NCBI GenBank assembly: GCA_002104905.1
Contig: MCFE01000160.1
Location: 62,001 to 126,000, forward strand
From: Basidiobolus meristosporus CBS 931.73
Taxonomy: Eukaryota; Fungi; Basidiobolomycota
Length of the DNA: 64,000 nucleotides
Direction: 5' to 3'
The notes under the pieces: generated by a model
The model's database searches: none
What the model was told of the DNA's origin: nothing
Seen by the model: only the letters and a program-made list of their open reading frames with translations
Position numbers and translations under genes: made by a program
Shown: positions 24,726 through 58,228 of the stretch, one piece after another
Position numbering within the stretch: position 1 is the first letter of the stretch
Layout of the letters: each line of letters opens with the position of its first letter

Positions 24726-27340
24726 ATGGACAAGACTACTTCAATTCAGCACCATAAGAGAAGAGAAAAAAGACCATGTGGCTATTGTAGCAAGCCACTC
24801 AGCCATGAAGCATGCAGACAGCATAGGAAGTATTACAAGGATCATGGCCAGTATTTTAACACATAAGTCATATTTGACCATTCATTGGTCACTACTGTAC
24901 TAACATTATCTTGCCAGCCAGTTGATACTTCTATATCAGCACCTAGCTATCTTTGTCACTCTATACAAACTGAGTCAGGTGAGTTTGTGATGCTTTTAGG
25001 CTCACCTCAGCCTTCTGAATATGGCATGCAGAGTGATAGCTCTGACAAAGAAGATCAACTGATGGATTGTGAGCCTATCTCCCTTAACAACAGTACCACA
25101 TATGAGCCAGGTCAAATCCCAATATGCAATGAGACAACACCAGTTGAAATAAATGCCAAGGATACATTATGGAGCCAAGTGAGCCCAGTAATATATCTAC
25201 TGTTGAATGATGTAATGTTGTGGCTGGAGAAGTGGCGTGTTTCCACTAATATCAGTAATGGGAGCTTTGAGGATTTATTACTACTTCCTGCCAAAATCAT
25301 ACCAGGATGCAAATTACCATGTACATTTTGCAAGTGGACAAGTGTCATGCAGCTGGTAACATATGAACCAGAGACTGCCCTGATTCCAGCATGTGTTAGC
25401 AGTTGCATGGCATTCACATCCAAAAGTGCTACCATTGCAATGTGTTCAAATTGTCAGGAATCCACTGCCATTGAGGGCAAACATTGTTCACACTAAATAT
25501 ATATTACAGTAATACCCCATATAAAGAAGCTATTGCAGTGTAACGAATATTGCAAGGCTATGCAGTCCCACACTCAGTATCAATCAGGCACAAACATATC
25601 CAATATATTTGATGGCCAACATTGCAAACAGCAAAGAAGCAAGGGCTACTTTGAAGGTATGTATGACCATGCCTTTGCCTTAGCACTTGAAGGATTCTCA
25701 TTAAACAAGTACTCAACTAGCAAATTCTGCTGGCCACTGATTCTCATCAATCTGAATCTGCCACCCATCTTACAGCATCAGAGCAATAATCTGATGGTAG
25801 TCTCACTAGTATCTGGGCCTAAATTACCATCCAACCTGGATGGCTACCTGCATCCATTGCTGGATGAGTTTTGTATGCTTTCCAGTGGGATAATAGTAAA
25901 TGGCCATCATATAGAAGCGCAAATTATTATCTGCATTGGAGATACCCCAGCCATCAGCAAGATGGCAGGTTTTTCTGGGCATTACAGATGGTATTACTGT
26001 CAAATGTGTGCAATCAAAGGAATATACTTCATAACTCAGACACATTATTATTACCCAAACACCAGCACTAAGATCATCATCTTGCCATGGAGAGAACGTA
26101 GAGTAGTCAGCATGCAATTGCAGCAAAGTTGGCAAGCTATAAGCCATTGGCCAGAATATGGAACCAATTGGAAACTGAATATATCAAAGATAGAGGGTAT
26201 CTGTTGGAGCAAAAGCTTTCCACTGGGAGCAATGCATTTGCTGTTCAACAATATCCCTATACTGATGGGCAAGTTGCACATGGGGCACTTCCAGCTATAT
26301 GAGCCTTTCAAGATACCAACAAAACTTGAAAGAATTGGCAAGATATTACAGAGTATCTGTTACTGTAAGTACTACTCATGGGCTCCAATTAATACTCATA
26401 TGCATATGCAACAACACAAATGCAAAGACTGGATGAACTGGATATGTATTTATTCAAGTAGTGCTCTAAAGCCATTGCTACCAAGAGTACATTGGAAGCA
26501 TTGGGAGTCATATGTGGGCATTGTAGGAATATTTATCCATATGCAGATGACCAATGCCAACTTGATGCATCTACAGCTGTTCTGCCCAAAGTTTGTGACA
26601 GGATTTGAGCGGCTATACTACAAACATGAAGCTGAACATGTAGATCTCTGCTGCCACTGAATCCATTTTCTACTCCATCTTGCATGGTGTGTGAAGAATA
26701 TTGGGCCTTGCTTCACCTTTTGGGAGTTTCCTATTGAGCAGATGTGTGGGGAAATAGGAAGACAAGGAAAGCTGTAGGTACTACCATATACCAATCTCAT
26801 CAATAATACTACCTTCAAGTTGGTCATGGATGTGATGAGTTGCCAGATGGAGGACAGCCAGGAAGAGGTGAAAAAACTGAGGACAGATGTGCACATGCAG
26901 ACACCTATGCCTATGGCATTAAGAAGCAAAGCAGCCACAACACATGGGTAATCAGTTAAGTAATGCAAAGTTGGGTTGGTGTAACAAGCAACTAATTTTT
27001 ATTAGGAAAACTCTACCAAGGTATGCTGGATTTTCTTGGTCACAAGCCAACTTCTACACAATTCAGTACAGAATTCACAGAAACAAGAGCCAGAGTGCAC
27101 CTATCAGGGGGACTAGAATCCAGCAGGGAGAAGGAATATACTGGCTCAATACTAAGAAGTTCTTTGTGGATATTTATGAGGTATTCATGGCAAAAGTGGC
27201 AACTTTGCAAGTATCACACTAAAAAGCTGTAAAGTTGAGGTGATAGAAGTATGTCTATTGTGGCAGGTGTGCATGCTTGTAGGGGTTAGTAAGCAGGAGG
27301 CCAAAGTTTTTTTTGATTTGAACTATATGTGAAATACCCA
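24726..27340 (+). pseudogene. CACTA/EnSpm (Tnp2, Transposase_21-like) transposase, copy 2
   Basis: FALALEGFS...CWPLILINLNLPP...LVSGPKLPSNLDGYLHPLLDE...IGDTPA...YCQMC...PLGAMHLLFNN...FWEFP. Apparent GT-AG introns near the 5' and 3' ends; stops present. Confidence 0.93.
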
Positions 27341-32757: not shown

Positions 32758-35447
32758 ATGGACAAGACTACTTTGACTCAACACCATAAGCAAAGAGAAA
32801 AAAGACCATGTGGCTATTGTGGCAAGCCTCTCAGCCATGAAGCATGCAGACAGCATAGGAAGTATTACAAGGATCATGGCCAGTGTTTTGCCACCCAAGT
32901 CATAATTGACCATTCATTGGTCACTACTGTACTAACATTATCTTGCCAGCTGGTTGATACTTCTATATTGGCACCTGGCTGTCTTTGTCACCTTGCGCAA
33001 ACTGAGTCAGGTGAGTTTGTGATGCCTTTAGGCCTACATCAGCCTTCTGAATATGGCATGTAGAGTGATAGCTCTGACAAAGAAGGTTCACTGATGGATT
33101 TTGAGCCTATCTCCCCTGACAACAGTACCACATATGAGCCCGGTCAAATCCCTATATGCAATGAGACAACACCTGTTGAGACAAATGCCAAGGATACTTT
33201 ATGGAGCCAAGTGAGCCCAGTAATCCATCTACTGGTGAATGATGTGATGTTGTGGCTAGAGAAGTGGCGCATTTCCACTAATATCAGTAATGGGGGCTTC
33301 AAGGATTTATTACTACTTCTTGCCAAAATCATACCGGGATGCAACTTGCCATGTACATGGTACAAGTGGACAATTGTCATGCGGCTAGCAACATATGATC
33401 CAGAGACTGTCCTGATTCCAGCATGTGTTAACAGTTGCATGGCATTCACATCCAAAAATGCTACCATTGCAATATGTCCAAATTGTCAGCAATCCACCAC
33501 CATTGAGGGAAACATTGTTCACATTCTGGATATATTCCAGTCATACCCCATCTGAGGAAGCTGATGCAGTCCGACAAATATTGCAAAGCTATACAGTACC
33601 GCACTCAGTATCAATCAATCTCAAACATATCCAATATATTTGATGGCAAGCATTACAAACAGCTAAGAAGCAAGGGCTACTTTGAAGGTATGTATGACCA
33701 TACCTTTGCTTTAGCACTTGATGGATTCTCATTAAACAAGAACTGTACCAGTAAATCCTGCTGGCCACTGATTCTCATCAATCTGAATCTGCCACCCATC
33801 TTATGGTATCAGAGCAATAATCTGATGGTAGTCTCACTGGTATCTGGGCCTGAATCACCGTCCAACCTGGATAGCTACCTGTATCCATTGCTGAATGAAT
33901 TTTTTATGCTTTCCAGTGGGATAATGGTAAATGGCCATCATGTAAAAGCGCATATTATTATCGGCATTGGAGATATCCCAGCCATCAGCAATATAGCAGG
34001 TTTTTCTGGGCACAATGGATGGTATTGCTGTCAAATGTGTGAAACCCAGGGGATTTATTCCATAACGCACACACATTATTATTACCCGAACACCAGCAAT
34101 AAGAACATCATCTTTTCACAGAGAGAACATACAGAAGTAGGCATACAATTGCAGCAAAGTTGGCAAGCTTTAAGCAATTGGCCAGAATATGGAATCAATT
34201 GGAAACTGGAGATACTTAAGATAGAAAGTATCTGTTGGAGCAAAAGCTTTCCACTGGGAGCTATGCATTTTCTTTTCAACAATATCCCTATACTGATGAC
34301 CAAGTTGTACATGGGGCATTTCAAGCGAAATGAGCCCTTTGAGATACCAGAGAAATTTAAAAAAATTGGCAAGATATAACAGAGTATCCACTACCCTAAG
34401 TACTTCTCATGGGCTCCAATTAATATACATACACATATATGACAATACAAATGCAAAGACTGGATGAACTGGATATGTATTTATTCAAGTGGTGTCTGAA
34501 GCCATTCCTACCAAGAGTACATGGGAAGCATTGGGAGTCATATGTGGACATTGTAGGAGTATTTATCCAGAAGCGGATCACCAATGCCAACTTGATGCAT
34601 CTACAGCTGTTGTGTGAGAAGTTTGTGATGGGATTTGAGTGGCTATACTGAAAACATAAAGCTGAATATGTAGATCTCTGCCGCTACTGTATCCATTCTC
34701 TACTCCATCTTGTATGGTGTGTGGAGAATATTGGGCCTTGCTTCACCTTTTAGGAGTTTCCTATGGAGCGGATGTGTGGGGAGATAGGAAGACAAGTCAA
34801 GTTGCTGGTACTACCATATCCCAATCTCATCAAGAATATTACCTTCAAGTCTGTCATGGATGTGATGAGTTGGCACATGGAGGACAGCTAGACAGAGTTG
34901 AAAAATACTGAGGACAAATGTGCACATGGAGACACCTATGCCCATGGCATTAAGAAGCTAAGCAGCCCCAATGTGTGGGTAATCAGTTAAGTAATGCAAA
35001 GTTGGGTTGGGTGCAACAAGCAATTAATTTTTATCAGGAAAACTCCACCAAGATATGCTGGATTTCTTGTGGTCACAAGCCAACTTCTACACCATTCAAT
35101 ATGGAGTTCACACAAACATAAGCCAGAGCCCCCCTATAAGGGGGACTAGGATCCAGCAGGGAGAAGGAATATATTGGCTAAATACCAAGAAGTTCTTTGC
35201 CAATATTCAGGAGGTATTCATGGCAGAAGTGGCATCAACCAAGCATATGCTTTCAAGATGTATATGCTACCAGCAGTACAAAGTATATGGCAACTTTGCA
35301 AGTATCACACTAAAAAGCCGTAAAGTTCAGGTGCTAGAAGTATGTCAATTGCGGCAGGTGTGCGCGTTTGTAGAGGTTAGTAAGCAGGAGGTCATAGATT
35401 TTTTTGATTTGAACTATATGTGGAATACCCAAGGTAGTAGTGGGTAA
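32758..35447 (+). pseudogene. CACTA/EnSpm-like transposase, copy 3
   Basis: MDKTTLTQHHKQREKRPCGYCGKPLSHEAC start; FALALDGFS...CWPLILINLNLPP (33564-34379); collinear with copy 2. Confidence 0.93.
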
Positions 35448-54674: not shown

Positions 54675-55622
54675 TAGGGATAAATATCCTTAGTATGGTG
54701 TGCTCGAAACCTCATGATTTTTTGGCTCTTCATTCAATAGAATGTTTACCTCCCAGAAATCTTGTCAGGTTTTTGTAAATTACAGGGCGCATTGTTCAGA
54801 AAGCCGAAGAAGCTCAGCTGTAAAAGAAATTTTCTTGACTGTGTAAATGCTCACCGAATCGGAATATTGATGCCATTCAGACCTGTGAACTATTTTATTG
54901 GTAAGATCGATTGGTTCGTGTGGAGGGTTTCCTTACGCTTAATTAACCATCACAGTGGGTAAGTTTATGTGTAACTCCTTGCTTATCCGAATCCTGGTTA
55001 AACTTAGTCACATGCCTCCAATGCATATTACCACCATTCCAAGAAAAAGCTAAGGCTACTTTAGCCTAATTGGTGTTATTGGTGCTTGAGAACTACACGG
55101 GTACCTGCTGGAACACAAGATAAATGCTTATGATGTTCATATCTCCTGATGATTCTTTTAGATTCACTGATAGCTAAACTCCATATTAACTGATGTTTAT
55201 CAATCTATCGTGCTTATGTATAACTCAATGCTTGTTCAGTCATTGAGCCATATTACGTGGATTAATCAAGTCCCACTTCATTGATGATCCGCGAGCATTA
55301 TCTTCTAGATGCTAGTGCGACAGAGTCAATGTGAGTCAAACTCTACATGTTTTGCTCAAGTCTGTAGATATATCAAAGGCATAAAATCCAATCAAATCCA
55401 ATCTGCGACTCAAGTGTAGTCTTATCTCATCTTCGAGGAAATTGATTGGTCAGCGGCGGGAATTGCAGTCAACCATCTTCGCACTCGCTGAGGCCGGTAT
55501 AAATACGACTCATCAATGTGCCAATCTTTACCCAACCGCAACAATCCATTTCGTCTTGGTACTTCGTACCCTAACCGCCTTTGCGTCGCACGGCTTGCAT
55601 TATCCCCTGTTCTCCCATCACA

Positions 55623-57214
55623 ATGTCCATCGATCAACTCATAAGGAATTCTGAAGAGAAGCCTTGGCTGGTTTTAAAGTTTGGCGGAACTAGCATTGGT
55701 AAATTTCTGGAATCAATTACCTCCACTATCGTACGCCAGGCACTCAAAACCCACAGAGTAATCATTGTTTGCTCCGCACGTAGCGGTAATACCAAATCTG
55801 CCGGCACTACCAGCCAACTGATCTCAGCTGCAGAGAGCGTGCTTCATCCCAAGTCTGCCAATCACCTACAGATTCTCAACAATCTTATGGAGGATCATCT
55901 GATTCATGCGCGGGAGTCTATCTTCAACACCTCTATTCTTGAGAAGCTGGAGAAGGATATCACCCAAGAATGTCTGAAGCTTCAAGGATTCCTTGATGCA
56001 CTTCAAGTAATCGGGGAGGTTTCAACGAAGTCCAAAGATCTGATTATTGGGCTGGGTGAAAAGCTCGCTTCCCTGCTTGTTGTTGCTTCTCTGGAAGACT
56101 GCTCTATCTCTTCGCAATTGGTGTGCCTTGACAAGATTATCGACAAGCACTTCGACGAGGCCAACCTGAATGAAGGGTTCTATGACTATCTCTCTTTAAA
56201 GTTCTCCGAGAAGATACATGCCTGTGATGGTTCCATCCCGGTTGTGACTGGCTATTTTGGCCCAGTACCCGGAGGAATTTTGCAAAGTATTGGTCGAGGC
56301 TATACAGATTTGACTGCGGCCTTGTGTGCTGTTGGTATTCGCGCAGAGGAGCTTCAGATTTGGAAAGAAGTCGACGGGATATTTACAGCGGACCCCCGCA
56401 AAGTTCCCAACGCACGACTTCTGAAAATCATTACTCCAGATGAAGCTGCTGAACTCACCTACTACGGCTCTGAAGTCATTCACCCCTTTACCATGGACCA
56501 AGTGATTCATGCAAAAATCCCCATTCGCATCAAAAATGTCCAGAGCCCAGACGGCCTGGGTACCATGATCTTCCCGGACAGTAACCAGAAGGGGGATTAC
56601 TCCCCTCACTCACCACAGGTGTTGCTAGCCAATGGATATCTCCCTGACCTTTCTCGGAGACACCCTACTGCGGTGACCATCAAAGAGGACATATTCGTAC
56701 TGAATGTACACTCGAATCGCAAGTCGGTATCTCATGGCTTTTTTGCGAAGATCTTCTCTATCCTGGACAGCTACGGCATCCCCGTCGATGTGATTGCTAC
56801 TAGCGAAGTCCATGTGTCTATGGCACTTGGAACAAGCACCTGCGAGCTTCATTTGAACAGCGCTGTCAAGGAGCTTTCACAGTTCGGGACAGTGGATATC
56901 TTAAGAAACATGGCTATTCTCAGCCTCGTTGGAAAGCAGATGAGAAACATGGTTGGAATTGCCGGAGCAATGTTTACCAGCCTTGCTAAAGCAAATATCC
57001 TTTTTATTCATTATCTGCGGCTCGACCAACCAATCATTCCATTAATACTTTAACTCGCTCTTTACATATTAACATTGAAATGATTTCCCAGGGAGCATCC
57101 GAAATCAACATCTCCTGTATTCTCTCAAGGAAACACGCAGACAACGCACTTCGAGTAGTTCACGACAGTTTGTTGGCGAATGTCGATTACAGTGAGTTGC
57201 ACGGGAGTATTTAA
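55623..57214 (+). CDS. HOM3: Aspartate kinase; exons 55623-56994 and 57066-57214, joined across an AT-AC intron
   Basis: VLKFGGTSIG, VCSARS, IGRGYTDLTAA, IWKEVDGIFTADPRKV, ELTYYGSEVIHP and two ACT domains. Splicing restores LAKANINIEMISQGASEINISC. Confidence 0.96.
56995..57065 (+). other. U12-type (minor spliceosome) AT-AC intron, 71 nt
   Basis: 5' site ATATCCTTT, branch point TACTTTAAC (57046-57054), 3' end TTTAC; removal restores the conserved frame. Confidence 0.92.
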
Positions 57215-57845: not shown

Positions 57846-58228
57846 ATGGAACACACAGGAGGCGGTGATTACTACGGTAAACAGCCACATTTTCAGCACC
57901 ACGGGCGCGGAAGGGGTAGGGGAAGAGGTCGCGGTGGAAAAGGTAACTGGAGAGGCCGTGGACGAGGCCAACACCACGGACATGGGAACTTCCGAGGACA
58001 TACGAACCCCAACTCAGGAGAATATCCAGTAGCCCCTAAAGTAAGGAAACCTTCGGATCCTCCCTCAGGCCTATTCTCATAAGGCGCAGATGTACTAATT
58101 CCGCGATTGACTAGAAGCAACGCACTGATCACCCTCCTTTCAATCCAAGCACCGATGATATCTCAGTTTATTACAAGAAAAGCTTTCTACTGGATCCTTG
58201 GTCTCATTTGGACAACCCTGCCCATTGA
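57846..58228 (+). CDS. Small RGG/His-rich protein with an MPLKIP/TTDN1-like C-terminal motif, 102 aa; exons 57846-58040, 58115-58228
   Basis: Phase-0 GT-AG intron with an ACTAAT branch point; the product ends ISVYYKKSFLLDPWSHL, resembling the Y(F/Y)KPSMLEDPW motif of MPLKIP. Confidence 0.65.

Follow-up and report, generated by a model that had tools for sequence, protein, structure and literature searches.

An AT-AC intron of the U12 type in a fast-evolving aspartate kinase paralogue of Basidiobolus that looks like a lineage-specific gain

The DNA that was analysed, called the window throughout, is a 64-kb stretch of contig MCFE01000160.1 of the fungus Basidiobolus meristosporus CBS 931.73. 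It contains an aspartate kinase gene with an open reading frame that starts at 55623, is unbroken through 56994, and then stops at a TAA (57051-57053), before the C-terminal part of the last ACT domain has been encoded. The locus raises the questions of how the conserved frame is continued, which type of intron is involved, and how old this intron is. A sequence-only reading had proposed the removal of a 71-nt AT-AC intron with U12-like 5′, branch-point, and 3′ elements, and its coordinates, its motifs, and the spacing of 11 nt at its 3′ end were all confirmed (Table 1).

A homologue search yielded 3811 matches, the top ones of which are named aspartokinase. The Pfam domain AA_kinase was identified on residues 15-305 (E 2e-37), and the last ACT domain, ACT_9, on residues 433-492 (E 5e-29). 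With an N-terminal kinase domain, C-terminal ACT domains, and close named homologues, the gene encodes an aspartate kinase of the HOM3 type, and it contains the full domain set of the fungal enzymes of this type (AA_kinase, ACT_9/ACT_7/ACT). The protein is 57-65% identical to the aspartokinases of early-diverging fungi. It differs from the fungal HOM3-type enzymes in being a fast-evolving second copy, which is specific to Basidiobolus and exists beside a slowly evolving, intronless copy.

The translation of exon 1 is 100% identical to P0001, the aspartate kinase of B. meristosporus CBS 931.73, and this public protein (NCBI/JGI, 506 aa) equals, residue for residue, the translation obtained after AT-AC splicing. 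The gene range in the public record MCFE01000160.1 is 1592 nt, i.e. 1521 nt of CDS plus 71 nt. Thus, the intron is already included in the public annotation.

Canonical U12-type AT-AC introns of animals and plants have the 5′ consensus ATATCCTT and a TCCTTAAC-like branch site 10-15 nt before the 3′ AC. Positions 56995-57065 of the window contain the extended 5′ consensus [A/G]TATCCTT, a branch motif within the range of about 10-15 nt from the 3′ site, and AT-AC ends. The agreement with the canonical introns comprises a 9/9 match of the 5′ site, a TTAAC core at the right distance, the AT-AC termini, and the lack of a long polypyrimidine tract, the spacer between TACTTTAAC and the 3′ end of the intron consisting of 11 nt (TCGCTCTTTAC). 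In contrast, the branch motif deviates from the consensus by an A in place of T and a T in place of C (TACTTTAAC versus TTCCTTAAC), i.e. seven of nine positions match and the TTAAC core is intact. Two further differences from the animal and plant introns are the host gene, which is missing from animals, and the position of the intron, which is not shared with the other sampled orthologues.

Excision of 56995-57065 joins LAKA to NINIEMISQGASEINISC, and the result aligns without gaps with ten homologues. The position of ATATCCTTT is exactly the junction that homology requires, and the spliced product of 506 aa includes FTSLAKANINIEMISQGASEINISC. The intron follows residue 457 and splits ACT_9, in agreement with the earlier claim that it interrupts the last ACT domain. 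We regard it as very likely that 56995-57065 is a genuine AT-AC intron of the U12 type, and that its host gene, a divergent aspartate kinase paralogue specific to Basidiobolus, has no other intron.

Table 1. Features of the aspartate kinase gene and its predicted intron (positions in the window)
Feature	Position	Strand	Details
Aspartate kinase CDS, exon 1	55623..56994	+	457 codons and first base of codon 458
AT-AC intron of the predicted U12 type, phase 1	56995..57065	+	71 nt, 35% G+C; from the excision map and the public gene range
5′ splice-site motif ATATCCTTT	56995..57003	+	9/9 match to the U12-type consensus
Branch-point motif TACTTTAAC	57046..57054	+	candidate branch adenosines 57052/57053, 13/12 nt from the 3′ end of the intron
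In-frame stop codon TAA within the branch-point motif (TTTAAC)	57051..57053	+	ends the retained-intron product
3′ terminal AC of the intron	57064..57065	+	intron ends with CTTTAC
Aspartate kinase CDS, exon 2	57066..57214	+	last two bases of codon 458, 48 codons, stop; C-terminal part of the last ACT domain

The exact borders of the excised segment were inspected. The sequence ATAT forms the first four bases of the intron (56995-56998) and again the first four bases of exon 2 (57066-57069). Because of this repeat at both junctions, excisions shifted by +1 to +4 nt yield an identical mRNA, and a shift of +5 nt yields a synonymous one. Six excisions give the conserved protein, and shift 0 alone has recognised terminal dinucleotides, AT-AC. 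For comparison, all in-frame GT-AG and GC-AG introns between 56700 and 57205 were enumerated. The claim that no GT-AG intron repairs the gene was borne out, as all alternatives of both types spoil the conserved product; each of them alters its length by at least ten residues, with one exception. A 56-nt GC-AG intron (56936-56991) would delete about 18 conserved residues and would read through the AT-AC intron.

The U12 motifs alone are not significant, because a loose version of the full U12 signal pattern was observed once, while about 0.7 occurrences are expected per shuffled 64-kb window. The motif RTATCCTT alone is found eight times in the window, versus 4.9 expected. The remaining seven RTATCCTT sites were classified as chance matches; six of the seven lack a branch motif, and no coding context was seen for any of them. 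At the site at 54684, only a weak TTCTTGAC is present about 150 nt downstream. Two matches to GTATCCTT, at 25158-25165 (-) and 33190-33197 (-), have nearly identical flanks, showing that they sit in two copies of one repeated element; no branch motif is found downstream, and both were rejected as U12 introns and regarded as chance matches. What carries the evidential weight for the predicted intron is the coincidence of two elements, a 5′ motif that is perfect over 9 nt and a branch motif at the proper distance, exactly on a junction that is fixed independently by homology.

The 5′ motif of a minor intron pairs first with U11 and then with U6atac, and its branch motif pairs with U12. At this locus, U11 and later U6atac would pair with ATATCCTTT, and U12 would pair with TACTTTAAC at a distance of 12-13 nt from the 3′ AC. 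Excision would join codon 458 (A and AT) and would restore the second half of the C-terminal ACT domain. Translation of an unspliced RNA would end at the TAA of the branch motif and would yield a protein of 476 aa instead of 506 aa, consistent with the earlier proposal that retention leads to a truncated enzyme. This predicted product has a foreign tail of 19 residues (NILFIHYLRLDQPIIPLIL) and lacks residues 458-506. Because the stop codon lies inside the branch-point motif, any unspliced transcript would be ended by the splice signal itself.

The sequence-only reading had deduced that a working minor spliceosome exists. This part stands, but not as a novelty, because minor introns and snRNA genes have already been published for the species and its relatives. 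Larue and Roy (2023) found 249 minor introns in B. meristosporus, i.e. 0.554% of its introns and the top density in fungi (PMC10639083), and Olthof et al. (2024) reported 237 (PMC11347168). Genes for U11, U12, and U6atac have been described in zoopagomycote species, as well as a putative divergent U4atac in B. meristosporus (PMC11347168). An Rfam scan of the whole 64-kb window revealed no minor snRNA gene. The intron described here equals the catalogued minor introns of B. meristosporus (PMC10639083, PMC11347168) in species, intron class, and sequence signals, and the gene model that these two surveys would have read already includes it. Aspartate kinase is not discussed in either survey, and individual gains are not demonstrated (PMC10639083, PMC11347168). 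The only new point is, therefore, that the intron looks like a gain specific to Basidiobolus.

To characterise the junction in a second species, the C-terminal 107 residues were used for a search. It led to P0151 of Basidiobolus ranarum (KAK9679858.1, “Aspartokinase, variant 2”, 181 aa); a Logan or transcript-derived protein of B. meristosporus across the junction was not found by this search. The cluster mate of P0151 is P0241 (KAK9679857.1, 217 aa), and both originate from one B. ranarum contig of 3440 nt. P0241 and P0001 are 84% identical, whereas the values for all other aspartokinases are 61-67%. This identity, together with a grouping of P0241 with P0001 at 100/100 support, characterises P0241 as the orthologue.

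In P0241, splicing uses the same junction as in the window gene model (LAKS/NINIEMISQ). P0151 retains the intron and reads LAKS-NILF-YNSLNLFKMM, and the corresponding read-through of the window is LAKA-NILF-IHYLRL. The residues NILF, which are encoded by the 5′ splice motif, are identical in both species, and two of the ten following residues are identical; the conservation of the splice motif in B. ranarum is read from this four-residue protein read-through only. The identity between the window and B. ranarum is 137/167 for the compared part of exon 1 and 45/49 (92%; P0241) for exon 2. Because the conserved frame of exon 2 joins exon 1 only if a segment of 3n+2 nt is removed, splicing is supported in both species. 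This conserved frame is strong indirect evidence, and we infer excision from the RNA from the gene models in combination with conservation. Labels such as “variant 2” in annotation pipelines usually reflect transcript evidence. On the basis of the two gene models, the intron would already have been present when B. meristosporus and B. ranarum diverged.

The intron positions of orthologous genes were compared by protein-to-genomic mapping of 11 aspartate kinase genes from nine species, a sample without Entomophthorales, chytrids, Blastocladiomycota, and non-fungal outgroups. The genes of Rhizophagus, Phycomyces, Lobosporangium, Coemansia reversa, Dimargaris, and Syncephalis contain one to five GT-AG introns each, and that of Ramicandelaber has zero introns. 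Five positions are recurrent in fungi, i.e. 37/2, 128/0, 160/0, 209/1, and 423/0 (P0001 numbering), and none of them is occupied in any Basidiobolus copy. Three Basidiobolus copies are intronless, P0004 of B. meristosporus as well as P0002 and P0003 of B. ranarum. Among the mapped genes, an intron at 457/1 is present in the window gene only. The earlier claim that the intron falls outside the U12 set shared by animals and plants is thereby extended, as the position is unshared even with the other sampled fungi.

In the phylogenetic tree, P0001 and P0241 form a group with 100/100 support on a long branch (stem 0.77). This group is sister to the intronless Basidiobolus copies with moderate support (91/84), inside a Zoopagomycota clade (100/98). 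The absence of all five recurrent positions from both paralogue lineages suggests an intronless Basidiobolus ancestor before the U12 intron appeared. Parsimony on this limited sampling indicates that the intron was probably gained along the Basidiobolus lineage, either around the time of the duplication from which the fast-evolving paralogue arose or later. Sliding of an intron from the old position 423/0 was considered and appears implausible, as this position is 34 codons upstream and is occupied by a different intron type.

The genomic neighbourhoods of the two copies were also inspected. The intronless paralogue (L001 287-1985; L002 1-1775) adjoins a gene for SF1/branchpoint-binding protein in B. 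meristosporus and in B. ranarum, and because of this common neighbour it is syntenic between the two species. According to the public annotation, the neighbours of the window copy are genes for a PPR protein and a trehalase upstream and for a bZIP protein downstream. A short distance downstream of the aspartate kinase lies a small gene with two exons (57846-58040 and 58115-58228, +; 65 and 37 aa), whose product has an RGG-rich N-terminus. Its intron spans 74 nt (58041-58114, GTAAGG...TACTAAT...TAG), and its exon 2 matches the Pfam family MPLKIP (PF15502) with an E value of 4.1e-07 and 30.5 bits versus a cutoff of 28.9. The public annotation has no gene called across 57846-58228.

How might the intron have arisen? 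The Basidiobolus ancestor would have lost all old aspartate kinase introns, the gene would then have been duplicated before the split of B. meristosporus and B. ranarum, and the U12 intron would have been gained in the fast-evolving copy or just before it came into existence. We lean, a little less firmly than for the lineage of the gain as such, towards a fairly recent event, in which an intron with canonical U12 signals entered an intronless, newly duplicated aspartate kinase before the two species separated. A transposon-derived intron (introner) would be expected in numerous, almost identical copies flanked by target-site duplications. Neither the 64-kb window nor three further Basidiobolus loci (L001-L003) yielded a similar copy of the intron; the only hits were chance matches of at most 12 nt. 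In the window and these three loci, nothing but the 4-nt repeat at the junctions points to a mobile-element origin. The ATAT repeat could be due to chance in AT-rich sequence, or it could reflect the way in which the intron entered the gene.

An alternative is that the U12 intron is ancient, i.e. that it goes back to an early ancestor, fungal or eukaryotic, and has disappeared from the rest of the sample. This would be compatible with the general view that minor-intron gain is very rare outside Physarum and that most minor introns are old (PMC10639083). The sample of only nine species leaves room for it, and the loss of the minor spliceosome from a lineage necessarily entails the loss of its U12 introns. 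However, position 457/1 is free of both intron types in seven orthologues, which represent Glomeromycotina, Mucoromycotina, Mortierellomycotina, Kickxellomycotina, Dimargaritales, and Zoopagales, even though the old intron at 37/2 persists in most of these genes. Many independent losses would be needed, including one in Rhizophagus, which is rich in minor introns and holds about 200 of them (PMC10639083). The apparently intronless ancestor of both Basidiobolus paralogue lineages, which lack all five recurrent positions, also argues against inheritance. Taken together, we consider an ancient origin unlikely, albeit deserving of more credit than any of the three alternatives that follow, which concern the nature and function of the 71 nt. 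One of these is that the major (U2-dependent) spliceosome removes the segment as a rare AT-AC intron of the U2 type. Such introns occur in other eukaryotes, but the 5′ site at this locus is the extended U12-type ATATCCTTT and not a U2-like AT followed by an AAGT-type sequence, the branch motif is 12-13 nt from the 3′ end, and there is no long polypyrimidine tract. In addition, the U2-type introns of the fungal orthologues start with GTAAGT, GTATGT, or similar sequences and end with AG, so that we give this explanation very little credence. We judge it just as improbable that the 71 nt are a disabling insertion that is not spliced at all, located in a decaying duplicate, and that both public gene models were forced by homology. 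The long branch of the paralogue would fit such decay, but the open reading frame is intact over 506 codons and all Pfam domains are present. Furthermore, exon 2 is 92% identical between the two species and is in frame only after removal of the 71 nt, while the intervening sequence diverges right after the 5′ motif, and a perfect ATATCCTTT plus a correctly spaced branch motif at the exact ends would not be expected by chance.

The remaining alternative concerns function. The sequence-only reading had suggested that slow or conditional minor splicing regulates aspartate kinase and, consequently, the flux into threonine and methionine, via a product that lacks half of an ACT domain. As a rule, the splicing of minor introns is less efficient than that of major ones, and a defined product of 476 aa with its stop codon inside the branch motif is predicted. 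In B. ranarum, both a spliced and a retained form are annotated, but this hints at regulation only weakly at best, as the retained isoform may be mere unprocessed RNA. Arguing against regulation, the housekeeping role more likely belongs to P0004, the paralogue that lacks introns and evolves slowly. Moreover, the published analysis prefers to explain minor introns in general by neutral processes, and in Rhizophagus a proposed link of minor splicing with cell proliferation received no support (PMC10639083). A regulation of the flux into threonine and methionine by slow minor splicing is therefore speculation, and we regard it as improbable.

Compared with these alternatives, a gain of the U12 intron within Basidiobolus is the reading that we prefer. 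As a further example of a fungal U12 intron, the locus adds little, since it stems from the record-holder species and the public gene model already splices 56995-57065. Its residual value is evolutionary, because recent evolution is regarded as nearly devoid of minor-intron gains. The authors of the survey found the richness of Basidiobolus notable, as the reconstructed ancestor of the Zoopagomycota was poor in minor introns (PMC10639083). The locus looks like a single case, with canonical signals, of a U12-type intron at a new-looking position in a lineage that is unusually dense in minor introns. A lone AT-AC intron in a lineage-specific paralogue, common to two species, offers a clean test case for the origin of new U12 introns. 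If the gain is true, it would be a datable example of the process that has given Basidiobolus the top density of minor introns among the fungi.
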